Made by a program: the position numbers and the translations under genes. A stretch of DNA of 64,000 nucleotides, from the IMG/VR virus record IMGVR_UViG_3300028864_000014, positions 124,001-188,000 of that record. One strand, given 5' to 3'. This document shows, piece after piece, positions 3,475-57,503 of the stretch. How positions within the stretch are numbered: position 1 is the first letter of the stretch; every line of letters begins with the position of its first letter. Under the pieces are notes generated by a model. The model was not told the DNA's origin and did no database searches. It saw nothing but the letters and a program-made list of their open reading frames with translations.

Positions 3475-6229
3475 ATGACAGCATTAGAAGTATATAATTT
3501 TTTAAAAAATTCAGGAAAATTTTCAGATTTAATTTTTGGAGAACCAAATTCTAACGTAAGATATTCTCCATTTGCAGAAATAAAGTATGTTATAAACAAA
3601 TCAGAATATATTATAGAAGTCACTAATGAATATCAATACTCTTTTTTTAGTTGTCATCCATTTACAGATATTAAAGGATTAGAATTTGTTATTCTTAATG
3701 ATTTTTGTGAAGAAAAAACAATTATATCTAATTTCAAAAGATTATTAAAAAAAATAATAAAATTGGATATTTACATCCAAAATAGAGAAATTGATAAAAT
3801 TGTGATAAAAGATATAATAAATAATCATATTAAAAAAACATATAATTTAAATGTTGATTTGACATACGGATATTTAAGTAAATTATTCAAAAATTACATG
3901 ACTATTAAATTTTCACCAAAAAATATCACGTCAAGAATAAAAAGAAAGCCATCATACCACCAAGTATCATATAATAAAAAATTATTTGATACTTCATTAG
4001 AACATTATTCGAAATATGATATTTGGGTATTTTTTAATAATAATAACTCTCATGTCGCATTAAATTTATATTATGACGGAGAATCAAAAAAATTATTATC
4101 AATTGCAAAAAATGAATCATATCAGCCTTTTAGCAATGATATAACTAAAATAATAAGAAAAGAAAAACTTATTAAACTTATGAATGATGACTGATATTGA
4201 GACAATAGAAATAATTAAAAAATACATATTAAAAAAGAAATTTGAAATTGAAATTGGTAGTGTTGATAAAAATTATATATCATTTTATTATAACTTAAAT
4301 GATTCAGATTATTGTATTAATATATTCATTGAAAAAAACAAAAATAATCAGTCAGTTATAAAATATTATTCAAATTGTAATATTTTTAATATAAATAGAT
4401 TGAGAACTTCTGTATCAAGCAAAAATTATTTACGTAGTATTTATGATAATTTGATTTATATTAAAACTGAGTTGAATAAAATATCAAGATATGAAAAAGA
4501 AAGATATGATAATAATAAAAAATATTGCACAGAGTTAGAAAGTCATTATAAAAAAATTCATGATAATGTTAATATTGAAGTTTTTTTTCCTAATGACGAT
4601 AATATTAATATTAAAATAACTGGTTATAATAATAACAAAATTACTATTTATAGCATAAATTATACTGACAATAAATATTACCTTAATAGTCTTGAAGAAA
4701 AATATTCACCAAATAAAACAATATGAAAGCACTACACATCACATCAGAATCTAATGGTTACGAAGAAGTAGAATTACTTGCAAACAGAGTATCAAGAACA
4801 AATGGACTTGCTGTAATTGAGATAAACGGAGAAATATTAATGACTGGAGGTTTTTTAATTCAAGATACGCCTGAAATAAGAATTATATTGGATAACACAT
4901 CAAAAGATAAGCAATTTGATTTAATAAAATCAATAAAAATGGATCCATTTGCTGCATTCTATTATGAAGAATAATTATGATATTTTCAGATAAAAAATAT
5001 TCACATTTAGAAGATGTTGAAGGTAATAAAATATATGATATTATTACTTACCCTTATCTATTCGGATTTGATGGGTCTTATGATGATATTGTATTAGAAT
5101 TAAAAATAAATTCTGATAATACAATGGATTTGAAGTTTGATAATAATACATTGTCAGGATTTAATAATACTTCAAATAAACAATTTTCTGTTTGTAAAAC
5201 AAAGCAAGATAGTATGCTTAAAATATTTAAAAAACAATTATTGAAGTACCCTTATCCAACTGATGAACTAACTTTAATATTTAGTAAATAATATAAACTT
5301 ATTGGTTTTCTTGTAGTATATAAGAAAAAATTAAATTTATGAATTATAATATAACGGTGTTTCTTGACGATAGTAGTATAATAACTATACCTGCTGAGTA
5401 TGAAAATGAATATACACTAAAACAAAACGTGACTGCAATAGGAAATAATGGTGTATGGGAAAGTACGGGAAGTGATTATATATTTACTCCTTCTCATAGA
5501 ATATTCAAAATTGATGTATGGAAAGACAAAAAATAAATTTCTAAAAATAAAATAAAATAAAATAAAATATGAAAATAAAAGAATACAAAATTCAAATGAC
5601 ATTATCAATTGAATCAGAAGAAGCGGATTATGAAAGAGTAGAACAATTTGCTCAAGAACTTGCAGAGAGTCTTATTCAAGATAATCCAGTATCATACGAT
5701 GATATTGATATCGTTGAAACTGTAGTTACCGAAGTTCAAGATCTTAATGATGATGAAGATTTCACAAATTTAGATAAAAATGGTGATGAAATTGAAGAAG
5801 AAGAATATTAATTAAAAAATAATTAAATAAATTATAAAAGTAAAACTTTATATATTATTAAAACTAAACAATAAACAAATTATTAAATAAAAAATTATGA
5901 ACATTACCGAACAATTATCAGAAATGGTTAATCCATCTACTGAAATCCAACAAAATTTTCTTGAAGAAGTTAAAAAAGTTAAAATCTTTGATCTTAATGA
6001 AACTGATAAATTAGCTTTGATTGATTTTCTTTGTGATAAAGCTGAACAAGATTTAGCTTTCGATTATCTTTATCATGTATTGGATAATGAAATTTCATAT
6101 CCTATTGATGATGAAAAAGTAAAAACACTTTTTGCTGACGAAAGAATGCAAAAAATGAAAGATTTAATGTTAGCTCAACTTAACGATGAAGATTCTGAAG
6201 ATTCAACTGACGAACCAGTAGAAGATTAA
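3475..6229 (+). other. run of 7 co-oriented hypothetical ORFs (3475-4194, 4184-4726, 4723-4974, 4977-5291, 5339-5536, 5569-5811, 5897-6229)
   Basis: Overlapping or abutting ORFs with A-rich initiation regions; no recognisable domains; the last two are highly acidic. Confidence 0.75.
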
Positions 6230-6246
6230 TTTTCAAATTAACTTTC

Positions 6247-6307
6247 TAATAAACCTATAATTTTACAATAAATCATATTAGTTTATTGTTAAATTATAGG
6301 TTTATTA
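6247..6307. repeat. 26-bp inverted repeat with 1 mismatch and a 9-nt loop
   Basis: taataaacctataattttacaataaa / tttattgttaaattataggtttatta. Confidence 0.85.
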
Positions 6308-6340
6308 TTAATATTATATTGTTTATTAAAAAATTTTCAG

Positions 6341-6389: not shown

Positions 6390-7145
6390 ATGAACAAAAA
6401 CGCATTTAGAAATTATGCTACTAAGCATTTAGGTATTAATGGAACATTGGTAGATGATGTGACAAAATATCAAGTCAAGAATTTTGGTTTATCTCCTCAT
6501 GTTTTAGAAGAAAGACAACTTAATGTAACCCAATTGTCCGTATTTGATAGACTTATGATGGATAGAATTCTATGGGTGTCTGGTGAAGTGGATGATACAA
6601 TGTCTGATATTATTCAAGCACAATTATTATATTTAGAGGATTCTGATCCTAAAAAAGATATTACAATGCAAATATCAACACCAGGAGGATCAGTTATTCA
6701 TGGGTTAGGTATAATTGATGTTATGGATTATATTAAGCCTGATGTAGCCACAGTTAATTTAGGAATGTGTGCTTCAATGGGTAGCGTTCTTCTATCATCT
6801 GGTGCAAAAGGCAAACGTTCATCTTTAATTAATTCTACTGTTATGTTACATCACGTTGCTGCAGGAAATAGTGGGAAAGTAGATGATACTCGTATTAGTC
6901 AAATGGAGACTGAAAAATATAATTTTTTACTATTCAAAATTCTGGCAAAAAATTCTGGAAAATCATTTGAAGAAATTCATGATTTCTGTCAAAGAGACAT
7001 GTGGCTAAATTCTGATGAAGCATTAAATTATGGTTTGATTGATTCTATTATCGGATTAACTGATAACAAATCAAATTCTATTACAACTATGATGGATGGT
7101 TTTGATGAATATTATATGAAATATGTATTTAAACAAGTAAAATAA
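6390..7145 (+). CDS. clpP: ATP-dependent Clp protease proteolytic subunit
   Basis: VFDRLMMDRIL, ISTPGGSV, GMCASMG (catalytic Ser), VMLHH, RDMWLNSDEALNYGLID; long N-terminal extension. Confidence 0.95.
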   Translation: MNKNAFRNYATKHLGINGTLVDDVTKYQVKNFGLSPHVLEERQLNVTQLSVFDRLMMDRILWVSGEVDDTMSDIIQAQLLYLEDSDPKKDITMQISTPGGSVIHGLGIIDVMDYIKPDVATVNLGMCASMGSVLLSSGAKGKRSSLINSTVMLHHVAAGNSGKVDDTRISQMETEKYNFLLFKILAKNSGKSFEEIHDFCQRDMWLNSDEALNYGLIDSIIGLTDNKSNSITTMMDGFDEYYMKYVFKQVK

Positions 7146-7146: not shown

Positions 7147-7665
7147 ATGACTGGAAAATTAGATAATTATTTAGTTGAAAAATATCCTAAAATTTTCATA
7201 AATCGTTATGGTGATATGAAATCTACTGCAATGTGTTGGGGATTTGAACATGGAGATGGTTGGTTTTGGATATTAGATCAACTATGTTATTCTATTCAAA
7301 GTTATATTGATATGAGTAATGAATATTTATCTGATGATAAGAAAATTCCTCAATTAGTTGCATCACAAATAAAAGAGAAATTTGGAACTCTTAATTTTTA
7401 TTATGATGGAGGAAATTCTGAAATTGATGGAATGGTTAGATTTGCTGAAAATATGTCAGCAGGAGTATGTGAGTTTTGTGGATCAACTGAAAACATTGGA
7501 GGAACAAAAGGATGGATTTCAATTATATGCAAGTCATGTTATGATAATTCATCAGATAATGTCAAAAATAGAGTATGGACAGAACGCAAAAATAATCTTT
7601 CATATAGTAACACAATGAAAGAAGTTAGAAAAATAAAACTTGATAAATTAAATAGAGATTTATAA
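7147..7665 (+). CDS. conserved-looking phage protein with Cys pairs and RKxKL tag
   Basis: GFEHGDGWF, QIKEKFGTLNFY, CEFC...CKSC; ends VRKIKLDKLNRDL. Confidence 0.7.
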   Translation: MTGKLDNYLVEKYPKIFINRYGDMKSTAMCWGFEHGDGWFWILDQLCYSIQSYIDMSNEYLSDDKKIPQLVASQIKEKFGTLNFYYDGGNSEIDGMVRFAENMSAGVCEFCGSTENIGGTKGWISIICKSCYDNSSDNVKNRVWTERKNNLSYSNTMKEVRKIKLDKLNRDL

Positions 7666-7666: not shown

Positions 7667-7701
7667 AAAAAATAGTTAGATTTATATCTAACTATTTTTT
7701 T
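7667..7701 (+). terminator. intrinsic terminator
   Basis: aaaaatagttaga/tctaactattttt stem plus T-run. Confidence 0.75.
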
Positions 7702-7703: not shown

Positions 7704-8671
7704 ATGAAATATTTTACTTATATTTGTATTTCAAGAATTGAAAATATGGAATACAAAGATTTAATAAAAACGATTAAAAAATACGAAGGTTCATATATAG
7801 AGTTTATAATGGATTTAAGTCATAATAATAAATGGTTTTTGATGACGATCAAAGAAGATTTATTTAAAATGAATTATAAAATAATAATTCTGAATAATAT
7901 ATTTAGTTTTTATGAATTACAAAAAATTACAAAAAATATAGAAGAAAAAACAATAATTTTTGTAAATAATAAAATAGATAATAATAATTTTAAAGATCCG
8001 TATAGATATTTCAATGAAAATTGTACTATAATATTTTTATGTGAATATTATAAGCATAAAAATAATAACTCAGTAAATAATATACTTAGTGACTTTAATA
8101 ACATAAGATTAACATATTCATCAGGTTTAATAGTTTCTGTAATATCAGATAAAGTAAAAATCGAAAAATCAAGAATTGAAAGAATTGATTGTGATAGTTA
8201 TTTCTATACATATACTGCAGTAAGAAAATTAAAATTAAAAATAATAAATTATAAAATTGAAAATAATATAATATGAAAGATGTAAAAGAATTTGTAGAAC
8301 AATTAGTCAATATTGATTTAATTGAAAATGAAGATTGTTATGGTCATTATCCATTTCAATTATTTGTAGAAACAAGTGATGGTAAATTCGAAATGAATTC
8401 ATTGGCATTGGGTGGTGATGTTGAATCATGCTACAGTAGAGTAAAGAATTATTTTAAAGATGGCGCAAAGAGAATGTTCATGTCATTAGATTTTCCTGGC
8501 TCTCAAGATATTGAAAATGATTTTGTGTGTATTTACTCAATTGTGGATGGTGATTTTGATGTATATGCAATTCCATATGACACAGAAACTGGAGAAGTAT
8601 ATGAAGAGATTCATAAAAGTGTTTTATTAGATAAAATTCTTGATGATTTCAAAACTCTTTGCTTGAAATAA
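7704..8671 (+). other. two hypothetical ORFs (7704-8276 with RKxKL tag; 8273-8671 acidic)
   Basis: ORF track; ATGA-type overlap. Confidence 0.7.
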
Positions 8672-9537: not shown

Positions 9538-9569
9538 TTTGGTAAATACAAATAAACGAATTATCTTTG
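9538..9569 (+). promoter_or_regulatory. Bacteroidota sigma-A promoter
   Basis: TTTG (9538-9541), 20 nt, TATCTTTG (9562-9569). Confidence 0.8.
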
Positions 9570-11187: not shown

Positions 11188-13252
11188 AAGTAAAAAAATG
11201 TGATTTTACGCTCAAAGTATCAAATACAGTAGAGTGGTTGAAAGATATGGATGAATGGACATGTCCATTAAGTATATCAGTTTGGATAAAAAAAGATGAA
11301 TGTATGTATGATCAACATTTTACTGAGGATTTTCCAATATTAGATGATTTGGAAATTGAAGAACCTGGTGAAGGCGATATGTACTACTACGGAGAAACCC
11401 CAGTCACACCAGAAGAAATGGTAATAAAATTACAGAAATTAGGATTTGAAGCAGAAATATTCACAAAACCAAATTTTGATTAAATTTATCATGGAAGAAG
11501 AAATCGTAAAATCATATAATTTTATGTGATTTTACCGAACTATATTATGATATCAGAATAAATTAAAAATTAAAAATATGAGTAAATATAAAATAACACA
11601 AGAATTATTAGTTAAAGTAAAATTACTTTATCCTGATTGTGATGTTTTTGAATCTAAAATAAAAAAAGACTTTATTGGAGTACGTAGGTTTCTTGGTAAA
11701 TCAAAATACTACAGAGATGATAAAACAACATTTGAAGTTGATATGACATCAGTTGATTATTTTCATGTAGCAGAAGCTATTTTAGACACTAATAACTTAT
11801 AATATGATAACTAAAACTTTGAACAATAAAACCTTTATATTCAAAGACTATGAAGAGCCAGACTATAAAGAAATTTCATATGAAGGCAAAACATACAAAT
11901 ATAAACAAGGTGAAAACCAATACGGAAATAAAACATATTTTTACTATGGCACTACTCATAATAAATATAATAAATATTTATTTTTTGGACCTATAATAGT
12001 AGAAACTGAGCCAAAATTATTATTTGAAATATATGGTCATATTGAATCTGAAATATTCACTAAGAATGAAGTACGAAATAACATTAAAGAAAAAGTAGAT
12101 TTGATAAATAGAAGAGCAGAAATAAAAAGAGGAGAAATAATTTGAGATGAATAAAAATTATGATGATGGAAATTGGAATTGGAAATATGAATGCATATAT
12201 GCAAATGAGACAAATGATCCAAATGATTATTATTATGTAATAGAATTTGATTCTTCAAATGATTATGATTTCAACCCAGTTGATATTACATGTTTTTATA
12301 AACCTCTTGAAAATGTATTAGAAATACACAAAGAAAATACATTAATTAATTTTTTTGTTGAAAATTTTTCTGATATTAAGAATATACTAAATCCAATGAT
12401 TAAATCATATAACGCAATCACATATCCAATATACGTAAGCAAAAAATCAATAAGAAGAGATAAATTAAATAATCTATCATGACATCAAAAGATATATGCA
12501 ATAGAATATTATTCATTGATAATAGAATCTTCGGATTGAAAATACTTATGAATCGTTATTCACTTAGTAATGATGAATATTTGGAATCATATAATAGCAA
12601 AGTTGAATTTGAAGAGGAAATAAAAAAACTTGAAAAAAACTTAAAATTAAATAGAATAAGAAAAGAAAAATTAAAAGAATTAAATGACATCAAAAGATAT
12701 TTACAATAGAATAATTAAAATAGAAACTTCATTATTCGGACTTAAAATTATTGTCAATAGCAATTATGGAATTAATTGTAATCATATAGAAGCTATTAAT
12801 GAAATTATTGAGTTAAAAAGAGAATTGTATATATTGAAAGATAAATTAATTAATATTAATATAAGAAAAGAAAAATTAAAAAATCTCAATAACATATGAT
12901 TGATTATAGCAAAGATATAATATTATCAAGAGAAATGAAAACTGTACATGAACAAATGTCTGACAAATTATACGAAAATGTGAGATTGCTATGTAACGTA
13001 GAAACAAGAAATAAACAAATATACGTCTCATTATTTAATTACAATTATTTTAATTATGAGTATCCTTATTTTGATGATCATGACGTAATATATAAAGTAG
13101 ATAATGAAGATTTCTATAAAAACTTTAAAAAAATAAGAAAAATCAAAGGAGATTATAATAATTCATACAAACCAATAAAATTTAAAACTGAACTTGAATG
13201 CCTAATATATTTGAAATCAATAGGTATTGATGAAGTTAGCCTAAATAATTAA
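11184..13252 (+). other. run of 7 hypothetical ORFs; 12479-12709 and 12684-12899 are tandem paralogues
   Basis: The paralogues both start MTSKDI.NRI...GLKI and end IRKEKLK.L. Confidence 0.75.
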
Positions 13253-13269: not shown

Positions 13270-13301
13270 TTTGGTAAATTGAAAACTTTTTTGTACTTTT
13301 G
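13270..13301 (+). promoter_or_regulatory. Bacteroidota sigma-A promoter of the tRNA-Leu operon
   Basis: TTTG (13270-13273), 20 nt, TACTTTTG (13294-13301). Confidence 0.8.
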
Positions 13302-13518: not shown

Positions 13519-13603
13519 GCTCTGATGGTGGAATTGGCGATACACGAAGGTCTTAAAAACCTTTACATTAGAAACGATGCGGGTCCGAATCCCGCTCAGA
13601 GTA
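13519..13603 (+). tRNA. tRNA-Leu(TAA) #1
   Basis: Acceptor GCTCTGA/TCAGAGT, anticodon arm AAGGT-CTTAAAA-ACCTT, long variable arm, T-arm GCGGG-TCCGAAT-CCCGC, A73. Confidence 0.92.
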
Positions 13604-13608
13604 CAAAT

Positions 13609-13695
13609 GTTCCTGTGATGAAATTGGTAGCACATGCAAGACTTAAAATTTTGTGGATAGTAATATCCGTGTCGGTTCAAGTCCGACCAGGAATA
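13609..13695 (+). tRNA. tRNA-Leu(TAA) #2
   Basis: Acceptor GTTCCTG/CAGGAAT, CAAGA-CTTAAAA-TTTTG, long variable arm, T-loop TTCAAGT, A73. Confidence 0.92.
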
Positions 13696-13705
13696 CAAAA
13701 AAAAT

Positions 13706-13791
13706 GCTGATGTGGCGAAATGAATACGCGGCAGTCTAAGAAACTGTTTCTGAACAAAGTAAGAATGTGGGTTCAAGTCCCACCATCAGTA
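13706..13791 (+). tRNA. tRNA-Leu(AAG)
   Basis: Acceptor GCTGATG/CATCAGT, GCAGT-CTAAGAA-ACTGT, long variable arm, T-loop TTCAAGT, A73. Confidence 0.88.
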
Positions 13792-13798
13792 CAATAAT

Positions 13799-13872
13799 GA
13801 CTGAGTGATGTAATTGGTAACCATGTCATCCTCAAAAGGTGAATTTTGTGGGTCCGAATCCCATCTCAGTTA
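13799..13872 (+). tRNA. tRNA with Leu anticodon CAA and a short variable loop
   Basis: Acceptor GACTGAG/CTCAGTT, TCATC-CTCAAAA-GGTGA, 5-nt variable loop, T-loop TCCGAAT, A73. Confidence 0.85.
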
Positions 13873-13880
13873 CAAAAAAT

Positions 13881-13970
13881 GTTCCAGTGGCGAAACTTGG
13901 TTGAGACGCGTTAGATTTAGGATCTAATACAGTTAATGACACACTGCGGGTCCAAATCCCGCCTGGAATA
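13881..13970 (+). tRNA. tRNA-Leu(TAG)
   Basis: Acceptor GTTCCAG/CTGGAAT, TTAGA-TTTAGGA-TCTAA, long variable arm, T-loop TCCAAAT, A73. Confidence 0.92.
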
Positions 13971-13971
13971 C

Positions 13972-14021: not shown

Positions 14022-14450
14022 TCATAGATTAAATTTCTTTGTAGTATCTACTATATTTTTTCTATATAGATAATCTTTCATTTCTTCGTCTGTTAGGTGT
14101 CTAATATATCCTGTTGGAACCCATGCAAAGAAATCGTGTTCATCTATATCAGATAGTGAATTTCTTAATGCATACCCATAATACCATTCATAATTAACTA
14201 GCACATATTCTTTACTATAATCATTATCAGTAAATTTGTCAGTCGTCTTTTTTTCATTATGTCTATTATATAATACTGAGTCTAATTTTTCAATATATTC
14301 TTTATCTAATTTAACTATATCACCATCATAAACACCAGTATGAAATTCTGGCCTTTTTATATAAAAAATCTCACCATATGTTTCATCTTTTGTTGGTTCT
14401 CTTTGCCATATATCTTTTGATTCATTTATGAATTGGTCATATTTTTTCAT
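14022..14450 (-). CDS. hypothetical protein, CTS-like leader plus KFNL tag
   Basis: MKKYDQFINE|SK...TTKKFNL*. Confidence 0.8.
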   Translation of the reverse strand: MKKYDQFINESKDIWQREPTKDETYGEIFYIKRPEFHTGVYDGDIVKLDKEYIEKLDSVLYNRHNEKKTTDKFTDNDYSKEYVLVNYEWYYGYALRNSLSDIDEHDFFAWVPTGYIRHLTDEEMKDYLYRKNIVDTTKKFNL

Positions 14451-14878
14451 ATATTAAATTTATTTGCGTCTTTTTTTATTTTAAATAATTCTTCTGCACC
14501 TTTTAATCCAATTTTCAAAAATTCATCTAATGGAATAATAACATTATCATGACTACGAATATCAAATGATCTCATTTTAACTAAATCTATTGTATCTCTT
14601 AGATTTTCTGAATCACTCCAACTTTCATATACTTTAATATACCATATCCATTTGATATCAGAATCTTTATAATATTCAATATCGGATTTATTTATCAATA
14701 AATTTTTTATAGTATGTTGATCTAAATTTGCATATTTATTAAATTCATCAAATGCTTCATATTGTTTTTCTTCTGTTACATTTTCTAATAATATAAAAAA
14801 ATTAAAATCCATACCATTAGATTTGCCTATTTTTCCATATGCTCTATTTTCATTAATATATTGATCAAAACTTTTCAT
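14447..14878 (-). CDS. hypothetical protein, CTS-like leader plus KFNI tag
   Basis: MKSFDQYINE|NR...DANKFNI*. Confidence 0.8.
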   Translation of the reverse strand: MKSFDQYINENRAYGKIGKSNGMDFNFFILLENVTEEKQYEAFDEFNKYANLDQHTIKNLLINKSDIEYYKDSDIKWIWYIKVYESWSDSENLRDTIDLVKMRSFDIRSHDNVIIPLDEFLKIGLKGAEELFKIKKDANKFNI

Positions 14879-15321
14879 AGATTAAATTTTTCTGAATTTT
14901 TTATTGATAGATATTTTTCATATTGTTCTGTATATTCAGACATTATCATATCCATGTAAACTTTGGTATTTTTAATATAGAATAAAAAATCCTCGTCATT
15001 ATCGTCTTTTAAGTTCCAATTTGACCCTGCTTCTATTAATATTTTAATGATATTAATATTCTTTCTCATAGCAGCATAATGTAATGCTGTTCTTTCATAG
15101 GCATCTTGATAGTTAACATCAGCACCTTTTTCAATTAAATATTTAACTATATCTATTCTATTATTATCTGCAGCTAATATTAATGATGAATATCCATATT
15201 TATTTATATTATTCACATCAACTTTTTTATTTTCTATGAATTCTATTACTACATTCAAATCTCCTTCACGACAAGCATCAGATAATTTTTCATATGATTC
15301 AAACATTTTTATATATTTCAC
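14875..15321 (-). CDS. ankyrin-repeat protein, CTS-like leader plus KFNL tag
   Basis: GYSSLILAA...IVKYLIEKGADVN, ERTALHYAA...IIKILIEAGSN. Confidence 0.9.
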   Translation of the reverse strand: MKYIKMFESYEKLSDACREGDLNVVIEFIENKKVDVNNINKYGYSSLILAADNNRIDIVKYLIEKGADVNYQDAYERTALHYAAMRKNINIIKILIEAGSNWNLKDDNDEDFLFYIKNTKVYMDMIMSEYTEQYEKYLSIKNSEKFNL

Positions 15322-15935
15322 ACCGTAGTTTTATTTTTTAATTTTGAAATTGCTTTTTTCATTATATCAATTGTCAAATTACTAATTTCCATTATATTAA
15401 AATCTCCTTCAATTTCTGTGTTATGAGGATGTTCAATTTTAATTGACACTTTACTTAATGGTTTGCTTCCAATTACTTTTTGAGAATCATCTACTAATAT
15501 ATCAGCATACTTCCATTTATCCATTGATGAGTTAGCAAAAATAATATCATCATATTTGAATCCATAATGATCTAACCATTTTTTAGCTGATTCTTTTGAT
15601 TCTTCTGTAGGTTGTTTAGTTACAATATTTAAAGTAAATCCATAAGTTTTTACGAAGTCGTATATATTATTAATTGTATCAACTGCTCCTTTATATGGTT
15701 GTGCAATATCAAAAACTTCGGATTTTTTATTATCAAACCAAGTTTTAGATGATTCACCATTATAGTCCATTGTTTCATACCAATGCCAATTTTGATCCTG
15801 AGTTATTTCTTTATCTGGAAAGTATTTTTTATATAAGGTGTTGTATGCATTGACAAAATCACATATTGTACCATCAATATCAATTCCAATTGTTATTTTA
15901 TTTGTAAATGTTTCAAACATTTTTAGATGTTTCAT
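15318..15935 (-). CDS. 5'(3')-deoxyribonucleotidase (NT5C-like HAD) with CTS-like leader
   Basis: IGIDIDGTICD, PYKGAVD, IVTKQP, ILVDDS. Confidence 0.8.
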   Translation of the reverse strand: MKHLKMFETFTNKITIGIDIDGTICDFVNAYNTLYKKYFPDKEITQDQNWHWYETMDYNGESSKTWFDNKKSEVFDIAQPYKGAVDTINNIYDFVKTYGFTLNIVTKQPTEESKESAKKWLDHYGFKYDDIIFANSSMDKWKYADILVDDSQKVIGSKPLSKVSIKIEHPHNTEIEGDFNIMEISNLTIDIMKKAISKLKNKTTV

Positions 15936-16201
15936 ATATTAAATTTATCTGTATTTTTTTTAATTTTAACAAATTGCTGTAATCTTTTTTTGCTACCTGA
16001 AAAATCTAACAGATAAGATTTATTTATCCTAAATCCAAGATTTGTTTCATATGAATCCCAATATACATTTATAATTTTATGAACAGTATAATTATATAGA
16101 TTGTGCATTTTTCCATCAAATGTTATAGGGCAGTCAAAAATAGCGTAATCTCCTACTTTTGGCTCATTTGGTTTATTTTCAAATGTTTTCAGATGTTTCA
16201 T
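15932..16201 (-). CDS. hypothetical protein, CTS-like leader plus KFNI tag
   Basis: MKHLKTFE|NK...NTDKFNI*. Confidence 0.8.
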   Translation of the reverse strand: MKHLKTFENKPNEPKVGDYAIFDCPITFDGKMHNLYNYTVHKIINVYWDSYETNLGFRINKSYLLDFSGSKKRLQQFVKIKKNTDKFNI

Positions 16202-16693: not shown

Positions 16694-16888
16694 TTAATAT
16701 TTATTTTCTATTTTCTTCAATTTCATTTTTCTCAATTCTAATTTATCATAATATAAAAATGTAATTGTTATATAATCACTTTCTTGAGTTTGAACAACAT
16801 TAAATATTTCAAAATTCTCATTCACAAGCCAATCATTAATTTTCTCTTCCAATGTTGATTTATTGGAATTTATAACTTTACATTTCAT
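16694..16888 (-). CDS. small hypothetical protein with RKxKL tag
   Basis: Ends LRKMKLKKIENKY. Confidence 0.65.
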   Translation of the reverse strand: MKCKVINSNKSTLEEKINDWLVNENFEIFNVVQTQESDYITITFLYYDKLELRKMKLKKIENKY

Positions 16889-21794: not shown

Positions 21795-21829
21795 TAAAAA
21801 AGAGTAGATTAAAATCTACTCTTTTTTTA
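21795..21829. terminator. bidirectional terminator
   Basis: aaaaaagagtagatt/aatctactctttttt. Confidence 0.85.
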
Positions 21830-22405
21830 TAAATTAAATTTTTTAGAATCTCTATATAAAGGATAATATTTAGTATTAATTTCATCATATTCTTTCCAAG
21901 TGGTTTGAAAAATATATCCAAAGTTTTCTACATATTCATTATTTTTAGCCATATCAGCAAATAGTTTGTGATTATTTATACATCTCTTAATAAAAAATTC
22001 TCCTTTTCCTATAACAGAACTTATTAAGTCAAAATATCCGTCATCTGATGGCATAAAGGTTGAATATTTATTATCTAACCAAGTAGGTTTAAAATATAAA
22101 TAAAGTTCTTCTGTTAACTTATCATATTCCTTTCTAAAATTTATAATGGTATCGTATTCAAAATTTTTGAATACTCTTATTTTCAATTTTAATTCTTCTT
22201 CTTTATCTTTATTTTCAAATTCATCCTTAGTTTTAATTATTTTATTCCAATTAGCGACAGTTATAAATTTCCAAAATTCATCACTATAATTATTAACATT
22301 CGGTTTATTAGATCTAATAACATCACCATTATTATTCGAATATATAAGGTTACCATTATTATCATAATAATCAATTTTTTCAAAAATATTAAAATTTGTT
22401 ATCAT
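21827..22405 (-). CDS. hypothetical protein, CTS-like leader plus KFNL tag
   Basis: MITNFNIFE...DSKKFNL*; contains SDDGYFDLISSVIGKGE. Confidence 0.8.
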   Translation of the reverse strand: MITNFNIFEKIDYYDNNGNLIYSNNNGDVIRSNKPNVNNYSDEFWKFITVANWNKIIKTKDEFENKDKEEELKLKIRVFKNFEYDTIINFRKEYDKLTEELYLYFKPTWLDNKYSTFMPSDDGYFDLISSVIGKGEFFIKRCINNHKLFADMAKNNEYVENFGYIFQTTWKEYDEINTKYYPLYRDSKKFNL

Positions 22406-28241: not shown

Positions 28242-28262
28242 TTTAAAATTTTATTTTTTTAA

Positions 28263-39908: not shown

Positions 39909-40934
39909 ATGAAATTATTAAATAAAATTTTTGGCAAAAAAAAGGAGCCAATTATTCTAAAAGGATATTATACTGGCACTATTCAATTAAATGAAAATGA
40001 ATCAAATTCTAGTAATGATTATGATTATGTAGTTCATGTATCAGAATTAGAAAGGTATAAAGATAATTTATCAAAAATAAAACTAGAAAATGTAGAAATT
40101 AAATCTGGAATGAATATAAACCAATTTAATTGGATAAAAACTTGTGTAAGAGAACAATTTGTATCAATTTATGAAACAAATAAAATACAATGGTTAGAAA
40201 ATATTTCTACCTTAAATGATGAAAGAGCTGAAAAGCTTAAACAAATTAAAAAATCAAAATAAAATGTTTAATAAAAAACAACCAATAAAAGGACCAAGAG
40301 GTTTTTATCTTGAAACTATTTCGACAAAACAAGGATATGATAAATATACAGTTTTTTTACATGTTATAGAAGTAGAAAGGTATGAAAATAATTATTCCAG
40401 AGTAATATTAGAAAAGGTAGAAATTGAGAAAGGGGATGATCCTGATAAATATGATTGGATGAAGACATGTGCAAAAAATAAATTTGTATCAATAGTCAAA
40501 ACTGATAAAGTAGAATGGTTGATGCCTACATTAAAAAATGATAGAAGAGATAAAATTTTAGAGATAAATAAAAAATAATCATGAGTAAAAAACCAAAATT
40601 ACCTCAAGGATATTACATTCATAAAACAAATCTTAGTAAAAGTATAGGTAGTTCAGAGTCATATGAATATAAAGTGATGGTTTATGTTGAAGAAGTAGAT
40701 AAATATAATGGAGGAATATCTAAAATAAATTTAGTGAGTTTAGAAATCATTTCAGGTTTTGATCCATCACAATTTGATTATGTTAAAAGAGCGACCAAAT
40801 CAAAATTTATATCAATTAAAAATACCTCTGATATTGAATGGCTGGTAAGTGAAAATGATATAAAACAAGAAAGAAAAGAAAAACTTGATAAAATAAATAA
40901 AAAGAATTTTATACAAAGATTATTTTCAAAATGA
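39909..40934 (+). other. three tandem paralogues (39909-40262, 40264-40578, 40581-40934)
   Basis: Shared G.Y...V.V.E...Y....S.I.L...EI..G.....DW/Y.K......F.SI..T..IEWL and C-terminal R.EK[LI]. Confidence 0.85.
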
Positions 40935-41485
40935 AAAATAACTATTTTATTGTTATTTTGTTTTCTATCGTATCAGTTATGATTATTATATCATCTTGTG
41001 TATATTCATTAAATATAACATTAAGCTCAACTGTATTTGTTTCGTCAATTATAAACGTTGTTTTATTCTATATTTTATATTATACATCACATTTAATTTA
41101 TAATATTTATGAAAAAATTTGATATTAAAGAATTAGCAAAAGATTTAGTTAATGATTCAGTATTTAAAAATACTAATGTTGATAATATAATTTGTGTTGT
41201 AGAAGGATTGAGTTTTTGCCAAGATTTAGATATGATAGAATTGAGAAAGTATATAAACATTGCTCAAAGAAGTAAAAAATTAATTAAAATTAATGGAAAA
41301 ACTCATTGATATAAAAGGATTAGCAAAAAAAATTGCTAGAGAAACATTTATTTTTAAAAAATTAAATGTTTGTCAAGAATATTATGATATAGGAATATTT
41401 AATAATTTTAGTTATGATGATGTTATTGAATTAGGAAAACAATTAAATAAAGAAACAAGAAAATATAAATTAAAAAAAATAAATA

Positions 41486-41962
41486 ATGAAAAAGAATTAT
41501 AAATTTTTCCTTAAAGGTGAATTCAGCAATTGGTTTCCTTCTATTTTTACAGTAGATGATGTGACATATAATTGCGGAGAACAGTATATGATGCATCAGA
41601 AAGCTATTTGGTTTAATGATATTGAAACAGCTAGAAAAATAATGAACTCTAGTTCTCCTTCTGACCAAAAAAAGCTTGGTCGTAAAGTTAAAAACTACAT
41701 TGATGATGTTTGGAATAATGTTAGATATGATGTAGTAAAAAAAGGATTACGAGAAAAATTTTCACAAAATCCTAATTTTAAAAATCTAATGTATAAATAT
41801 AAAGATTATATTTTAGTTGAAGCAAATCCAAAAGATAGAATATGGGGTATTGGGTTTTCTGATTATGATGCATTAAGTAACATTGATGATTGGGGACAAA
41901 ATCTATTAGGTAAAATGCTGAATGAAATAAGCAAAGAATTTTTTGATGATGAGAAAAGATAA
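41486..41962 (+). CDS. NADAR (YbiA-like) family protein
   Basis: FSNWFPS, GEQYMMHQKA, KKLGRKV, EKFSQN, LVEANPKDRIWGIG, GQNLLGKML. Confidence 0.93.
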   Translation: MKKNYKFFLKGEFSNWFPSIFTVDDVTYNCGEQYMMHQKAIWFNDIETARKIMNSSSPSDQKKLGRKVKNYIDDVWNNVRYDVVKKGLREKFSQNPNFKNLMYKYKDYILVEANPKDRIWGIGFSDYDALSNIDDWGQNLLGKMLNEISKEFFDDEKR

Positions 41963-43346
41963 AATATTGTATTTGTTGAATGAATATAACGTTAAATATT
42001 CTACTGATTCTTATAGAGTTGATATTAAATATGAATATGGAGATTTCGTGTTTTATCTTAATAACTCTATGACAGGAGAAACGTGTTATGAAAAATTAAC
42101 TCCTGTATATGATATTAAAACTACAAGGAAATTGAAATTAGAAGAAATATGCAAATAGGTGATTATTTAATATGTAAAGATGATTATTATCTGGATAATG
42201 TATCAAAAAAATCTGGTGTTAAGATTGTTAATAATTTTTTTAGAAAACCATTTTTTATAAAAAACGAAAAATACAAAATAGATAATATCATTTTTGTGGA
42301 TGTGAATATAAGTTCATATACTTCTGGTACCACAAATAATTGTAGTCCAGATATTCATATTACATATAATATTAAAAATGATTATTTTGATTCCGAATTT
42401 ATTCCAAAATGGTTTTATGATATAAAAACAATTAGAAAAGAAAAAATCAATAAAATAGATAAATTATGCAAATCAAAATATGTGGTGGGTTGAATGATGT
42501 TGAATCACCATTAGATGAAATTTTGTATCAAACTATTATTCCAAGAATAGACGACATCATTTACTTTAAAAATAAAAGATATAAGGTGTATGAAATAATA
42601 ATTGATTATGATTATAATGAAATAAGTGTTTATGTCAAAGATAGTATAAAATAATATCTACTAAATTTTTAGTATTTGATTTTTTTATGTATCTTTGTTT
42701 TTAAAATAATATAATGATTAATAAAACTAAACCATATATTTTATATTCTATAGATAATGTATCAGAATTAGAAAAAATTCAAATTGAGTTATTTTCTAAA
42801 GGATATAAATGGCTAGATGGTCCTAATGTAGATATTACATTTGTAAATATGTATTCACCACCTAAATTTCCAATATATATTTCAAATTTACCAAATAATT
42901 TGATTGGTGATATTAAAAGTGATTTAGATAAAAGAAAAAATTTCAATGAATATAATAATAACATTTTATTTTTTTCTGTTATTAAAGAAGATTTTGATTT
43001 AAATTTATTAAGAAAATATAAGTTATTAAAAATAAAATCATATGATTAATGTATCATATGAATTTATAATAGAATTAGATACTATTATAAAAATAAAAAG
43101 TGTTGATGATGTACTAGATTATATCTTTTGCTACATATCTAGATTTCTGTGTTTAAAAGATGCTACAAATATTGTTAATGATATATTAAAGAATATTGAT
43201 ATTGAAAAATATGATGATACTATTTTAATAGGAATTTTAACTTCTATGATTCATCATAAAAATATATTATATTACGAAACATTTTATGAAAAAATTATGA
43301 TACTTTTAACTTCAAAATATGGAGAAGAAGAAACAACACAAATATT

Positions 43347-45213
43347 ATGGGGATTAAAAAATTAATAAAAGGAATATTTAAATTAAAAAAAACTTCAAAT
43401 AATACTGAAGTTGATGTTGAATTAGAAAATGAAGTCAAAGTTGATGTTGAAAATTCTGATGAATCAGAAGAAGAGAGTATTCTAGATGATTTTTCAATTT
43501 TACTTACAGGTGAAATATTAAAGAGTGAGGAACCTTATAAATCTCCTGAAAGTAATATTACTGAATCTGATAATTTAGCATATCAATATTATCTATTAGA
43601 TTATAAAGATATGTACAGGTGGCATGATAAGTGTCCTGCATCTCAACTTTATATTATGGATCATTATTATGGACAGAAATTTAATTCATATCATGAACAC
43701 GATGTAATAGATGATTATTATGAGAGAGCAATTAAAAATTTAAGAAAACAAAAATTAGATAAATTAGATGACAATTGATGAAATTGCTTATGGTATATTC
43801 ATAGAAGAATTTAATACATTAAAATTGTATGAATATCTTACTCCTCCTTCTAAGTCTGAATTTATAGCTGGAAAAAATCATGAGACTTCTTTTTATAAAA
43901 CAGCAAAAAATATTTTAAGAAAACAAAAATTAGAAAAACTTAATATTTTATGAAAATTGATTATACTATTGATATTGATGATATTAGTGATATTGACAAT
44001 TCTGCTTATGAATTGTATATAGAAGAATGCTGTGACAAAGAACAAATTAAAAAATTTTACATAAGTTCATCTTTTATATCTATTGAATTTTTTATATATT
44101 ATAAAGGTAGTTTTAGTGAATATTATGATAAAGCAAAAAATCATTTAAGAAAAAATAAATTAGAAAAACTTAACATTTTATGACAATAAATAATAGTGAG
44201 ATTGATAATTTAGCATATGAAATATATGAAAAAGAATATTATGAAAAGTATGAAAAAGGCGCATCAGTTTTCACTAAAAATTTTTTTATATTTCACAAAG
44301 ATTGTTTTCCTGAATATTACAATAATGTAGAAAAACATCTAAGAAAAAAGAAATTAGAAAACCTTAATATATTATGATAATTAATAATATTAGTGATATT
44401 GATAATTTAGCATATACAGAATATGAAAATTATCAATATGATACATATGGAGAGTATGTTTATATTTTAAATAAATCATATTTTATAAATAATAAAGAAA
44501 CTTTTTATGAGTATTATTATAAGTTAGAAAAATATATAAGAAAACTAAAATTAGAAAAATTAATAAATGTTCAAAATTAAGAAAAAAATTGAAAATATAG
44601 ATGACATTGCATATAAGTATTATATTTCTGATATTAAGCTTTCTTTTGGCAATGATACTGTGTATCTATGCTTTAATTCTTTCCTTATTGATAGTGTACT
44701 TGAAGAAAACTACGAAAAATATTACGAAAAATATTATATAAAAGCTATCTCAATTATTAGAAAAAGAAAAATTATAAAATTAAATGAAATTTACTAAAGA
44801 TATAGGAAAATGGTCTGATTATTCTACTATATTAGATGATATAGTTTATCAATTATATTTAAATGAAATGGAAGATGATGAATCAAGAAAAAATCCTACA
44901 GATCAAAAAATTCTTATTAATATTCATTCTAAATATAAAATTGATAAAATAACTAGAGCATATAAGATAGCTTTAAATATACTAAGAAAAGAAAAAATTG
45001 AAGAAATAAACAATGCAAGAAGTTGGAAATAAATACACCGAAATAGAAAATACTGCATATGAATTATTTTTAAATAATGAAAAATATTTAAGTATAAAAT
45101 TATTTGTTGTTTGTCATGATGTATTTGATATTTATAATGAATATTATAAAAAAGCTAACGATAGATTACGAAATAAAAAATTAAAAAAATTAAAAGATTA
45201 TGAAAATAAATAG
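43347..45213 (+). other. tandem array of 8 small D-x-[LI]-A-Y...YYxKA..LRKxKL paralogues
   Basis: ORFs starting 43347, 43768, 43950, 44180, 44374, 44567, 44784, 45013. Confidence 0.88.
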
Positions 45214-48818: not shown

Positions 48819-48852
48819 TTTGTGTATAATTAAATAAATAGCGTTATCTTTG
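48819..48852 (+). promoter_or_regulatory. terminator-adjacent Bacteroidota promoter
   Basis: agaaagtaa/ttactttct hairpin upstream, TTTG, TATCTTTG (48845-48852). Confidence 0.6.
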
Positions 48853-49129: not shown

Positions 49130-49844
49130 ATGATAACATCTCTAACCAATCTAACTAAATTGGATAATATTGCATATGAATTATATACTGATAATTATAT
49201 TTCTAAAACATATGATCCTTTATCATTATTTTCGTTTCATTATATTTATTATAAGAAATGTAGTTGGGGAGGAACATCTTATGACGATGTTAAAAAAATT
49301 TATGATAACGCAAAAATTACAATAAGAAAATTAAAATTAATTGAAATAGAAAATATTAAATTATGATAACATCAAATAAATTAGACGATATTGCATATAA
49401 ATTATATATGAATAGAATTGATTTTGATTGCGTATATAATTCAATGAGTAAAAATGAATTTAAAAATATTCTTTATGATAAAAAATTTGACATTGATTAT
49501 TATAACAGAGAAAGAACTGTTATAAAAAGTTTTTATTATAAAGCTAATATTATTTTAAGAAAAGAAAAACTTATAGAAATATCAAAAAATATAAAATGAT
49601 ATATCTTGATGATGTTATACATTATGTCAAACATAATAAAGTTCGTTTAGATATTGTATCTGATTATAAACATATTTATGATTATGATTTTCACATAGAA
49701 GAAAATACTGAAGTTTCAGTGTATTTACATTTAAATAAAAAACAATACGGCGGTGAAGTTTGTTATATTAAAATTATTAAAATTAAATTATCAGATATAA
49801 TATCTCAAATAAGAAAAGAAAAACTCAAAAAAATAAAATCATGA
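49130..49844 (+). other. three RKxKL-tagged ORFs, two of them D-x-I-A-Y family members
   Basis: DNIAYELY...IRKLKL; DDIAYKLY...LRKEKL; ...IRKEKL. Confidence 0.8.
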
Positions 49845-52396: not shown

Positions 52397-52428
52397 TTTG
52401 GTTTTTTCATTTATTTTTCATATATTTG
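52397..52428 (+). promoter_or_regulatory. Bacteroidota promoter whose -33 lies in a terminator arm
   Basis: aaccaaatgatt/aatcatttggtt; TTTG, 20 nt, TATATTTG. Confidence 0.7.
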
Positions 52429-52610: not shown

Positions 52611-54759
<2,149 letters not shown>

Positions 54760-54776
<17 letters not shown>

Positions 54777-55363
54777 ATATTTGCCTGATTATTGGAGTAA
54801 TGGTAATAATAAAGCGACTGAAGTATATGAAATAATAAAAAATTCTTCAAATGAAGAAATAGTAGAAGTTTTGAATATGTTTGATATTAAAGATATAGAG
54901 AAATTTTTAAGAAATAAAAAATTAAAAAAATTAAAATGAGAGAAATATCAAGAGTTTCTATGTCAGAATCAGAATTATATTCAACTATATCAAGAGCCAT
55001 TAATTATGACATTGTTGGAGAAATACCAATTAGAATTGATAATCTTATTAAATATGCATCAAAAGAAGATATAAATGATTCTTTAGAAAAATTTGAAATT
55101 AAAGATATTGAGAAATTTTTAAGAACTAAGAAATTGAAAAATTTAAATAAATAATTATGTCATTTATGTCATTTGGAATTACAAATTCAATTAGAGATTC
55201 AATTAGAGATTATCTGAATGTTCATGAAGTCTCAGATAAAATTGGAGTACTTATTGAAAATTTATCAAAAGAAGAAATTAATAATTCTTTAGATAAATTT
55301 GATATTAAGGACATTGAAAAATATTTAAGAAACAAGAAGTTAAATAAATTATTAAATGACTAA
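54760..55363 (+). other. three paralogues ending F[DE]IKDIEK[FY]LRxKKL (54760-54939 missing from the ORF track, 54936-55154, 55157-55363)
   Basis: Shared about 20-aa C-terminal block. Confidence 0.85.
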
Positions 55364-56629
55364 TTATAAAGGATATAAAGGTTATGGAAATTATGACTAT
55401 ACTATAGGAGTATGGAATTTAGAAGATAATGATTTATATAATATATCATATCAGCTATATTTATTTTCTGACGGAAATGAGAATTATGTGAATATATCTT
55501 ATGATCAAAATATATTTATTAACATGATTGAAATTGGTGATCCTTATTGTAATAAATTTTTAAAAATCGCAAAATCATTAATAAGAAAAGAAAAATTAAA
55601 TATTATAAATAACTTAATATGACAATTCAATTAGAATATGATATTGATAAAATTGCATATGGATTATATTTGATATATTGTAAAAAAAACCAAAATTGGG
55701 GTCCAACATTTATATTTGAGGATTATGTATATATCAAATCACAGATGAAAAATTATACTTCTGAATATGATAAAAAAATAATAGTCGATAACTATAATAA
55801 AGCTAATATAATTTTAAGAAAAATGAAATTAGAAAAATTAGAAAATGATAATAGATAAGACAAAAGGTAATTGGTGCAAAGAAGGTGAATCTGATTATAT
55901 AGATGACATAGCTTTTCAATTATATCTAAATTATTATTATAAAGAATATGGAGATTTTAATGATGATTCTCCTCAGAATAATTTTAAAACAGTAAGATAT
56001 ACTCATAATAGCCCGTGGTATTCATTTTATATTAAATCATTTAAAAATTTAAGAATTGAAAAATTAAAAAAATTAGAAAATGTTAATAGATAAAACAATA
56101 GGATATTGGTGTCAAAACAATGAGTCTGATTGTGTAGATGATATTGCTTTTCAATTATATCTAAATTGTCATTTTGATATATATGGTTCAGTCTCTACTT
56201 CTGACCAAAATGACTTTATGTGTTTAAGATATTATCATTCTATTTACTATTTATCTGGTTTTTATGAAAAAGCATTTAAAATTTCAAAAAATTTAATAAG
56301 AAAAGAAAAATTGAAAAAGTTGAAATATGAAATCAGTGCATGAAATTGAATATTCAAATATTCACATAGATAAATCAATAGGAAGATGGTCTAAAGATAT
56401 TCTTTATTCTGAACTTGAAGATGTGTTTTATCAGATATACGTTCATTGGTATTATAATGAATATATTATTGAAAATGATTCTGAAAATCCTTTATTGTCT
56501 CAAACATATTTCATGTCTTATATGAATACTATTAAAGAAACTAAGAATCACCATTCTTATGATGATTATTATAATAAAGCAACTCACATATTACGAAAAA
56601 TAAAATTAGAAAAATTGAAAAATGAATAG
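55356..56629 (+). other. tandem array of 5 D-x-I-A-[YF] family paralogues
   Basis: Starts 55356, 55619, 55845, 56080, 56327. Confidence 0.85.
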
Positions 56630-57503
56630 TGATTTTAAAATAGGAGATAAGGTATTTTTATGTGATGCAAGAAATTGTTTTACTGCAGAGTTGAATAAAC
56701 AATATACTATCATTAGCATAAAATATGATGATTATAACAAATATACAAAAATAGCATTTAATGAAAATATATCTGAATCAGAAGAATTGTGTTATTTGGA
56801 TTCCAGAAGATTTAAAAAAGATATAAAATATGAAAGAAAAATAAAATTAAAAGAAATATTAAATAATGATTAATAAATTTAAATCAGGAGATAAAGTTAT
56901 ATGTATAGATAATACAAATGCTTTTGAATTAATACCTTATATAAAATCATACACAATATCTCATATAAAAACTATTTTTATTTTTTTAGTTGATGAAGAA
57001 TCCAAATTTCCTTATGTTTATACTAGATTTGAATTCGATATTAAAACAATGAGAAAGGATAAATTGAAAAAAATACCTAATCATGAAAATTGAAAAAATT
57101 AAATGTAATTTAAAAATAGGAGAACAAATTGTTATAATTAAAGATACTATTGGTAATTCGGAATTAAAAATGAATAAAATTTACATAGTTGAATATATTC
57201 ATGAATATGTTAATCATATTAAGTTAGTAGGATTTGAAGAACGTATATATCAAAGTAAATTATTTAGCAATGATATTAGATTAATAAGAAAAATTAAAAT
57301 AGAAGAATTAAATGAACAATGATATTGAGAATTACGATATGTTAGTTGAATATTTTAATCAAAAATTAAGTTTAGCGTCTGGTATTCCAAAAAAATATTT
57401 ATATCCAGATCCACTTGATTCAATTGATTTTGATGTCATATTAAAATATTTAAGAAAAAAGAAATTAGAATACATAAAAAATAACAATTTAAATAATGAT
57501 TAA
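56622..57503 (+). other. three K-[IS]-G-[DE] (SH3/KOW-like) paralogues plus one further RKxKL ORF
   Basis: FKIGDKV.LCD, FKSGDKVICID, LKIGEQI. Confidence 0.7.

Follow-up and report, generated by a model that had tools for sequence, protein, structure and literature searches.

Why should dozens of small proteins with dissimilar bodies, encoded within one stretch of a phage genome, end in the same short peptide? This question is posed by a 64,000-nucleotide stretch of DNA (hereafter the window) that occupies about positions 124,001-188,000 of the 235,318-bp IMG/VR virus record IMGVR_UViG_3300028864_000014 and has a GC content of 20-29%. Here, 42 predicted proteins carry, close to their C termini, a sequence of the form R-K-x-K-[LI]-x-x-[LI], termed the RK tag. 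The observation is real, lies far above chance and is unexplained by composition. The preferred reading, considered to have about an even chance of being correct, is that the tag is a helical docking or address motif for one common, putative partner; where "address" and "degron" are used of it below, they denote roles that we infer.

The abundance of the tag was assessed in a set of 141 genes obtained by greedy selection of open reading frames (ORFs). Coding sequence accounts for 92% of the window under the standard genetic code, with TAA (94), TGA (40) and TAG (7) as stop codons. The strict pattern RK.K[LI]..[LI] was found within the last 20 residues of 32 of the 141 ORFs, and a looser one, R-[KNTIRS]-x-K-[LIVM]-x-x-[LIVM], within the last 26 residues of 41. 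Inclusion of the ORF at 39909-40262, which had been dropped by the overlap filter and carries the variant RAEKLKQI, gives the total of 42 counted in the initial annotation; the coordinates given there are ORF starts and not positions of the tag. When the last 40 residues of every protein were shuffled, means of 0.08 strict and 0.37 loose matches were obtained (maxima 2 and 4, respectively), and internal matches numbered two in 19,765 residues. The excess over chance is roughly 400-fold for the strict pattern and 100-fold for the loose one, well beyond the frequency of Lys-rich, AT-biased random C termini. Among ORFs of 130 residues or less, 36 of 92 are tagged.

Database searches placed none of these proteins. 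The 41 tagged proteins of the called set gave nothing convincing against Pfam and no match below E 0.003 against PHROGs; sequence searches of NCBIfam and PDB with the product of ORF 7147-7665 (hereafter 7147) and other tagged proteins gave no match, and a search of the ESM Atlas returned only viral clusters without names. A literature search with the motif strings and for shared C-terminal motifs of phage small proteins found nothing relevant. The tag is described nowhere in the sources searched and is outside every family tested.

The anatomy of the tag was derived from 410 pooled proteins, which gave the consensus [LIY]-R-K-x-K-[LI]-x-K-[LI]-N, with 3-5 variable residues after it. Numbered from the Arg as position 0, the least variable positions are R0, K3, L4 and L7, and their i, i+3, i+4, i+7 spacing places them on one helical face. 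The distance from this Arg to the C terminus is 8-26 residues, with a mode of 12 (within 10 residues in 31 of 424 tags), and the 0-18 residues that follow L7 are variable in sequence, being mostly N, K, E or I. Tags that lack K1 have a basic residue at position 2 in 29% of cases, as against 6% for the rest (p = 2e-5). Positions x2 and x5 are often acidic (E 26-35%), the motif contains no aromatic residue, and the 12-residue segment from -3 to +8 has a net charge of about +3.2. A coiled-coil oligomerisation helix would have a hydrophobic a/d heptad seam; in the tag, the conserved stripe R0-K3-L4-L7 sets Arg and Lys in the seam. A C-terminal helix with basic and aliphatic residues could in principle target the membrane, as the C termini of MinD or FtsA do, and the membrane was among the partners suggested in the initial annotation. 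However, the segment is polar, with a mean Eisenberg hydrophobicity of -0.45 and a hydrophobic moment of 0.19 (12 residues, 410 tags), and Glu is frequent in it. These values argue against membrane insertion and make such targeting extremely improbable.

The bodies that precede the tag fall into seven families (A-F and the 7147 family) and about 10 singletons. Comparison of tag-trimmed profiles of the seven families and ten singletons by hhalign gave a maximum probability of 4.7% between hidden Markov models, so that the earlier estimate of at least five unrelated families was conservative. Tandem paralogue arrays account for many copies, with about 15 in family A and 6 in family B. Single-chain AlphaFold2 models, one for each of these two families, predict different architectures. 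The family A protein (ORF 55619-55858) is modelled as all-alpha with a predicted local distance difference test (pLDDT) score of 88.8 and with the tag inside the terminal helix; the family B protein (ORF 56866-57093) is modelled as a four-stranded small beta-barrel plus a terminal helix that includes the tag (pLDDT 73). Foldseek comparison with the PDB returned nothing below E 3 for family A and nothing below E 0.6 for family B, for which only generic Tudor/SH3/Sm-like barrels were listed. Together with the Zn ribbon of 7147, the bodies are unrelated and their folds, as predicted, differ: an all-alpha bundle, a small beta-barrel and a Zn-ribbon. Among the database members of family A, P0191 and P0314 (141 residues) are of double length and are matched by the profile in the second half (in two stretches for P0191); they are possibly fused tandem copies of family A.

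All tags lie on the plus strand of the window except one. The all-alpha family A contributes RKQKLDKL at 43743-43766 (ORF 43347-43778, with a long N-terminal extension), RKQKLEKL at 43918-43941 (43768-43953), RKNKLEKL at 44148-44171 (43950-44183), RKKKLENL at 44342-44365 (44180-44377), RKLKLEKL at 44539-44562 (44374-44580), RKRKIIKL at 44759-44782 (44567-44797), RKEKIEEI at 44985-45008 (44784-45032) and the variant RNKKLKKL at 45169-45192 (45013-45213), in which Arg is encoded by CGA (AGA in the ortholog). Further copies are RKLKLIEI at 49325-49348 (49130-49366), RKEKLIEI at 49558-49581 (49363-49599), RKEKLNII at 55584-55607 (55356-55622), RKMKLEKL at 55817-55840 (the modelled protein), the variant RIEKLKKL at 56052-56075 (55845-56093), RKEKLKKL at 56299-56322 (56080-56343) and RKIKLEKL, again with CGA, at 56594-56617 (56327-56629). 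Family B carries RKLKLEKI at 37913-37936 (37694-37969), RKEKINKI at 42434-42457 (42149-42493), RKYKLEKI at 54729-54752 (54531-54776), RKIKLKEI at 56835-56858 (56622-56873), RKDKLKKI at 57052-57075 (the modelled protein) and RKIKIEEL at 57287-57310 (57083-57322).

In family C, the tags are the variants RNKKLKKL at 54910-54933 (ORF 54760-54939), RTKKLKNL at 55122-55145 (54936-55154) and RNKKLNKL at 55328-55351 (55157-55363), and in family D they are RKEKLKEL at 12659-12682 (12479-12709) and RKEKLKNL at 12864-12887 (12684-12899). Family E has the variants RAEKLKQI at 40224-40247 (39909-40262) and RRDKILEI at 40543-40566 (40216-40578) and the standard RKEKLDKI at 40872-40895 (40581-40934); family F has the variant RSKKLIKI at 41268-41291 (41109-41309) and RKYKLKKI at 41458-41481 (41293-41502). 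Other bodies bear RKLKLKII at 8223-8246 (7704-8276), the variant RRDKLNNL at 12453-12476 (12147-12482), RKLKLEEI with Arg encoded by AGG at 42126-42149 (41946-42158), RKYKLLKI at 43011-43034 (42714-43049), RKEKLKKI at 49812-49835 (49596-49844), the variant RRRKLKNI at 53007-53030 (52611-53072, 153 residues), RKTKLENL at 54222-54245 (53991-54260), RKKKLEYI at 57453-57476 (57312-57503) and, as the sole minus-strand copy, RKMKLKKI at 16709-16732 (16694-16888). The remaining example, RKEKLIKL at 4156-4179, ends a clade-restricted ORFan of 239 residues adjoining a DNA ligase (ORF 3475-4194); this protein has only 2 homologues, too few for a comparison of its body with and without the tag.

Whether the tag is portable can be judged from 7147 (172 residues), the tag of which, RKIKLDKL, lies at 7627-7650. 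Its body is that of a large and uncharacterised Zn-ribbon family, for which databases yielded 1,734 homologues, and it gave no match in Pfam, NCBIfam or the PDB; members occur in phages, prophages and megaplasmids of many phyla (loci L129-L198 and L279-L358). The ending ...ELRKIKLDKLN, after a variable linker, is present in 76 of the best 120 homologues, and the others stop directly after the Zn ribbon. Column by column, the family is well conserved in the body, poorly in the linker and well once more in the tag. Among 80 IMG/VR loci, the homologue is tagged in ten, only at 24-27% GC, each with 3-8 further tagged ORFs within 10 kb; at the loci of 30-57% GC where the homologue could be called, it is untagged and has 0-1 tagged neighbours. 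A scan of genome bins from many phyla found the body only in untagged form and gave no clue to the host, and the relatives in cultured phages are distant and untagged only. Since homologues of 7147 carry it only in AT-rich relatives with further tagged genes, the tag is a portable addition, specific to one clade, to a family of greater age, and the distribution of homologues indicates that the 7147 family gained it secondarily. The portability proposed in the initial annotation is borne out in that the tag sits on bodies predicted to differ in fold and has been added to a widespread and otherwise untagged family only in this phage clade.

The spread of the tag beyond the window was followed with a degenerate DNA scan of IMG/VR. 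Among the matches listed, many other low-GC contigs have in-frame tags near ORF ends, and in a 13.9-kb locus of a related 41.5-kb contig (L024) as many as 22 of 43 ORFs are tagged. Family A is represented by 398 clusters at E 0.001 or better, with 149 of the best 150 tagged (138 of them strictly), and family B by 70 database relatives, all 70 tagged; cultured phages gave no tblastn match to a family B member. Hundreds of database protein clusters bear the tag and none is characterised. A 242,497-bp version of the phage was found in another sample and the same sequence in more than a dozen peat metagenomes. The tag is restricted to a single clade of peat phages, which are AT-rich (about 24% GC) and have genomes of about 235-243 kb.

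One of the relatives bears on what the tag might bind. The earlier statement that no recognisable enzyme is tagged holds in the window, in which no convincing Pfam match was obtained, but in contig L024 a gp32-like single-stranded DNA-binding protein (positions 5514-6092, plus strand; PF08804, 30.5 bits) carries it. A basic helix that binds nucleic acid, and so carries the domains joined to it to the DNA or RNA of phage or host, would fit this protein, the net positive charge of the segment and the weak similarity of family B bodies to Tudor/Sm/ProQ-C-like small barrels. Contacts with phosphates would not, however, need two invariant aliphatic residues on the same face as R0 and K3, the frequent acidic residues at x2 and x5 are ill suited to the role, and there are only 3-4 basic residues per tag. 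Nucleic acid binding is accordingly judged improbable as the common function.

Is the conserved object a peptide or a stretch of DNA? The DNA pattern AGAAAANNNAAAYTN occurs 24 times in the window, on every occasion in frame 0 of a sense ORF and 32-62 nt before the gene end. Antisense, intergenic and out-of-frame copies numbered 0, and all 41 peptide matches lie in one frame, so that frame-independent conservation, the outcome that the initial annotation had set against its own reading, is not what is seen. Tag Arg codons in the window are AGA (38), CGA (2, in ORFs 45013 and 56327) and AGG (1, in the ORF starting at 41946), with CGT and CGG also used in relatives, and replacement of the Arg codon by AAA for Lys never occurs, though AAA is more A-rich. 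The Leu4 codons are TTA (27), CTT (4), TTG (4) and CTC (1), together with five Ile codons, roughly in genome-wide proportions; the codon variety noted earlier was confirmed, with CTC in addition.

The comparison of synonymous and non-synonymous change suggested in the initial annotation was performed on 16 pairs of orthologs, sharing 45-81% identity, from the window and two related phages. The tag shows 0.14 non-synonymous differences per codon, as against 0.37 in the bodies and, for the flanks, 0.37 immediately ahead of the tag and 0.32 behind it (p = 3e-8), which corresponds to a non-synonymous rate 2.7-fold below that of the bodies. R0 and K3 are unchanged in all 16 pairs, R0 in spite of two synonymous switches between AGA and CGA. 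These comparisons indicate that the tag is selected at the protein level.

In the mechanism proposed here, the tag would make up the final turns of a helix at the C terminus of many small accessory proteins, which are unrelated to one another and probably expressed early. Its R0/K3/L4/L7 face would dock into a groove of a partner protein, as such spacing leads one to expect, and the tag would act in trans as a common address tethering dozens of effector domains to a single partner, which either phage or host could supply. Among the candidates for it, the most concrete is a Clp-type unfoldase working with the cellular-type ClpP of the phage, which might achieve timed turnover or tethering of early proteins. 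The codons of the tag also provide the initiation region of the overlapping next gene and are thereby under a weaker, nucleotide-level constraint that avoids G-ending codons; such use of tag DNA as a start region may explain the near-constant overlap of tagged genes with their downstream neighbours.

Early expression is suggested by the signals that surround the tagged arrays. The pattern TTTG-N17-23-TAnnTTTG, of the Bacteroidota housekeeping promoter type, has seven intergenic matches in the window, all on the plus strand and 19-55 nt 5' of gene starts (224 nt for the tRNA array described below). One, at 48819-48852, precedes the tagged array at 49.1-49.8 kb and another, at 52397-52428, that at 52.4-57.6 kb; the others are at 9538-9569, 13270-13301, 34148-34179, 57673-57703 and 58465-58496. 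No Shine-Dalgarno motif was found ahead of window start codons, the -20 to -1 region of which is A-rich and G-depleted. The promoter matches and the lack of Shine-Dalgarno motifs suggest that the host is Bacteroidota-like and that its RNA polymerase transcribes the tagged arrays (early).

A phage ClpP adaptor was among the partners suggested in the initial annotation. The gene for a cellular-type ClpP (6390-7145, plus strand) lies 1 nt upstream of tagged gene 7147; its product scores 249 bits against the NCBIfam ClpP equivalog and 67 bits against the head-maturation ClpP model, and the gene sits among ligase and small-gene operons, not in a capsid module. In all tagged relatives, ClpP adjoins 7147 in the same syntenic arrangement. 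Within the docking model, the Clp version is nevertheless doubtful, and its support is circumstantial. Also doubtful is a wider addressing code, in which the RK tag would mark about a third of the small early proteins for one receptor (in its specific version a Clp unfoldase delivering to the phage ClpP, with a cohort of host-takeover proteins tethered or destroyed on schedule), a second C-terminal sequence, the KFN tail described below, would mark another set, and a new gene would need only to insert ahead of a resident tag to gain a function.

Several observations weigh against the docking proposal, and they are taken here in turn. The first is that families A and B are known only in tagged form, so that portability is directly demonstrated only for the 7147 family. 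Such constancy is what would be expected if there were no common partner and the tag were a generic terminal helix, serving solubility, capping, self-association or protease resistance, that was inherited from a few ancestors while the bodies diverged. The dominance of tandem paralogue arrays and the confident prediction of the family A helix as part of the fold also suit this explanation. It is nonetheless considered unlikely, given the different folds to which the tag is joined (in 7147, through a linker) and the secondary acquisition by the 7147 family. An invariant Arg and Lys on the same face as two Leu residues would, moreover, be unusual for self-packing or a coiled-coil seam, and stabilisation needs no invariant R...KL..L across 400+ proteins.

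A second point against docking as the sole role is that synonymous differences in the tag number 13, as against 22.5 expected from the same amino acids in the bodies (p = 0.013). AAA and GAA codons account for the entire deficit, changes to AAG and GAG, respectively, being absent, and G-ending codons are under-used. Synonymous change about 40% below expectation implies that there is some nucleotide-level selection too. At position 7, Ile is encoded by ATA rather than ATT in a ratio of 19:1 in the window and 26:9 in relatives (genome-wide, about 44:51). Codon-pair context was tried as the cause of this bias and does not explain it; the bias may come from frequent toggling between TTA and ATA (Leu and Ile).

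These features, together with the position of the tag DNA at about -38 to -2 of the next ATG and its strong association with overlapping downstream starts, would be accommodated if the element acted only as DNA or RNA, whether as an initiation region, as an operator for a RegA-like repressor or as a junction recombination cassette, with the peptide a by-product. As the sole role this is largely refuted and very improbable. The single reading frame of all DNA and peptide matches, the use of all Arg codon families and of four Leu codons, and the absence of Lys at the Arg position do not suit it. At some positions the tag carries as much as 28% G, compared with 1-7% in the start regions of other genes; of 101 genes that no tag precedes, only 6 have AGAAAA upstream; and the tag is retained in places with no following gene. 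Most simply, two constraints act together, in that a selected peptide is encoded by codons that must stay acceptable as a G-poor start region.

The third departure from a pure docking model is the overlap itself. The next ATG lies 23-32 nt after the first base of the Arg codon in 28 of 40 cases (range 23-77), as the initial annotation had described. When overlaps were counted in the tagged arrays at 37400-57700 and at the loci of relatives, 32 of 34 tagged small genes were found to overlap the next start, compared with 8 of 21 untagged genes in the same arrays (p = 1e-5), and the pattern was replicated in relatives (48 of 64 tagged and 42 of 151 untagged; p = 2e-10). The suggestion that A-rich tag DNA doubles as the initiation region of the following gene is supported, and a docking model alone does not predict so strong an association. 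It is possible that free residues past the motif let the next start move in, that gene cassettes are exchanged at tag junctions, or that the nascent tag helps termination-reinitiation in a host that does not use Shine-Dalgarno pairing. A frameshift fusion with the next gene was rejected, since in 37 of 40 cases the frame of the next gene is closed by a stop inside the tag or shortly behind it.

Aid to termination-reinitiation by the nascent tag amounts to a rival for the function of the tag as a whole. The nascent peptide would act in cis, from within the exit tunnel at termination, and tune termination or re-initiation for the overlapping next gene. Conservation at the protein level combined with a fairly fixed position near the stop, the overlap counts, and start codons lacking any Shine-Dalgarno-like motif upstream would all be in keeping with this. 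By contrast, 7147 keeps its tag where no overlapping gene follows: a terminator-like element succeeds tag and stop, as stated in the initial annotation, and consists of a 15-bp hairpin and U7 (7667-7701, plus strand; dG -14.9, z -6.2), and a terminator or a gap of 38-140 nt follows the tag in 4 of 5 distinct orthologs. The span of distances to the stop (8-26 residues) and the helical spacing of the invariant residues, which AlphaFold2 places in a confident helix, also tell against action in the tunnel, which is regarded as quite unlikely.

Two further points concern the Clp version of the docking model. ClpP lies within 10 kb of an untagged 7147 homologue in 13 of 70 other phage loci, and this loose linkage means that synteny alone does not tie the tag to ClpP. 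The differences between the tag and known ClpX degrons, given with the comparison below, stand on the same side.

The second C-terminal sequence, K-[FY]-N-[LIVM]-COOH (the KFN tail), forms the exact end of twelve ORFs and never occurs together with the RK tag, in agreement with the initial annotation. Plus-strand examples are 318-647 and 26174-26704; those on the minus strand are 14022-14450, 14447-14878, 14875-15306, 15932-16201, 21827-22405, 22408-23565, 23669-24487, 24491-24826, 24823-25164 and 25523-26173. The counterpart of ORF 14875-15306 in relatives is an ankyrin-repeat protein, so that the set with this tail is not only structural.

Elsewhere in the window, the nearest database relatives of the larger proteins are from uncultured huge phages. 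Five tRNA-Leu genes (13519-13971, plus strand; anticodons UAA twice, AAG, CAA and UAG) lie behind the promoter match at 13270-13301 and cover essentially all Leu codons that the phage uses. An operon on the minus strand (26733-31255), conserved in relative L359, encodes a DUF2201 metallopeptidase/VWA protein and two AAA+ ATPases. Relatives L116 (16490-17587) and L359 (5339-6085) contain homing-endonuclease-like genes (LAGLIDADG/helix-turn-helix and GIY-YIG) at sites where the window has none or differs, which suggests mobile insertions between strains.

In large phage genomes, no part is understood less well than the small accessory genes, and here one motif under purifying selection is found on about 40% of the small ORFs of 64 kb and in hundreds of metagenome clusters. 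The tag gives a single experimental handle on dozens of uncharacterised proteins, with one peptide and one pull-down. Were the partner a protease or unfoldase, a phage-encoded turnover programme for the early proteome would be at hand; were it a compartment or machine, a phage of Bacteroidota-like hosts would possess a sorting signal in the tag. The tag also offers a clean example of a linear motif spreading over unrelated families in a virus of bacteria. Tag codons that double as a start region suggest how new genes plug in at gene junctions, and a portable 12-residue tag could serve as a tool.

Several known systems invite comparison. The encapsulin cargo-loading peptides and the capsid-targeting sequence of phage T4 are short terminal peptides that address unrelated proteins to one shell, and the RK tag is similar in being one terminal peptide common to unrelated proteins. 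The encapsulin peptide is, however, C-terminal and rich in Gly, Ser and Leu, the T4 leader is N-terminal, and the sequence of the tag differs from both; tagged genes also stand in arrays behind host-type promoters, not in a capsid module, and no capsid gene was identified in the window. The membrane-targeting amphipathic helices at the C termini of MinD and FtsA differ in that the tag has neither a high hydrophobic moment nor a broad non-polar face. PeSL cassettes of T4-type phages are non-coding promoter-early stem-loop repeats that flank small ORFs. Like the tag, they recur where small accessory genes of hyperplastic regions meet, and either kind of repeat could favour shuffling, but the RK tag is in frame, varied in codon choice and conserved as a peptide.

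Closer to the candidate partner are the signals read by ClpX. The C motif-2 degron (MuA-like) has the consensus R/H-x-K/R-K-hydrophobic (PMC3983244). Both are basic C-terminal signals; R0, K3 and L4 of the tag align with the R, K and hydrophobic positions of this consensus, loss of K1 is accompanied by a commoner K/R at position 2, and the phage ClpP adjoins a tagged gene. On the other hand, the literal motif, with K/R at its third position, is matched by only 35 of 424 tags (8%), and the tag lies in a helix 8-26 residues from the end. The tag has in addition a second invariant Leu at +7. Motif-2 is placed within the last ~10 residues of a substrate, a range that takes in the Arg of 31 of 424 tags. 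Degrons of the ssrA or MuA type differ from it in that the tag Arg is so far from the end and the last residues vary; the ssrA-like C motif-1 has the non-polar end LAA-COOH, whereas the variable end of the tag is mostly N, K, E or I.

The XB tail of SspB tethers that protein to the N-domain of ClpX. The product of 7147 is built in a like manner, with a folded body, a poorly conserved linker and a short, conserved basic-hydrophobic peptide at the C terminus. The XB peptide is RGGRPALRVVK (PMC3983244), and its L-R-x-x-K spacing is common to the tag. XB stands, however, at the extreme C terminus and is not known in dozens of families per genome, and a likeness of 3 residues is a lead only.

Outside the phages, poxvirus PRANC/F-box tails and the RxLR and PEXEL motifs in effectors of eukaryotic pathogens show how fast-evolving effector families can share a portable motif that leads to one host machine or route. 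These belong to another domain of life and have other sequences, PRANC being roughly 50 residues long and RxLR and PEXEL N-terminal, so that any likeness to the tag would be one of logic only. By the same analogy, it is in its logic that the RK tag resembles portable address and degron peptides, with many unrelated bodies carrying one short peptide that may direct them to one partner.

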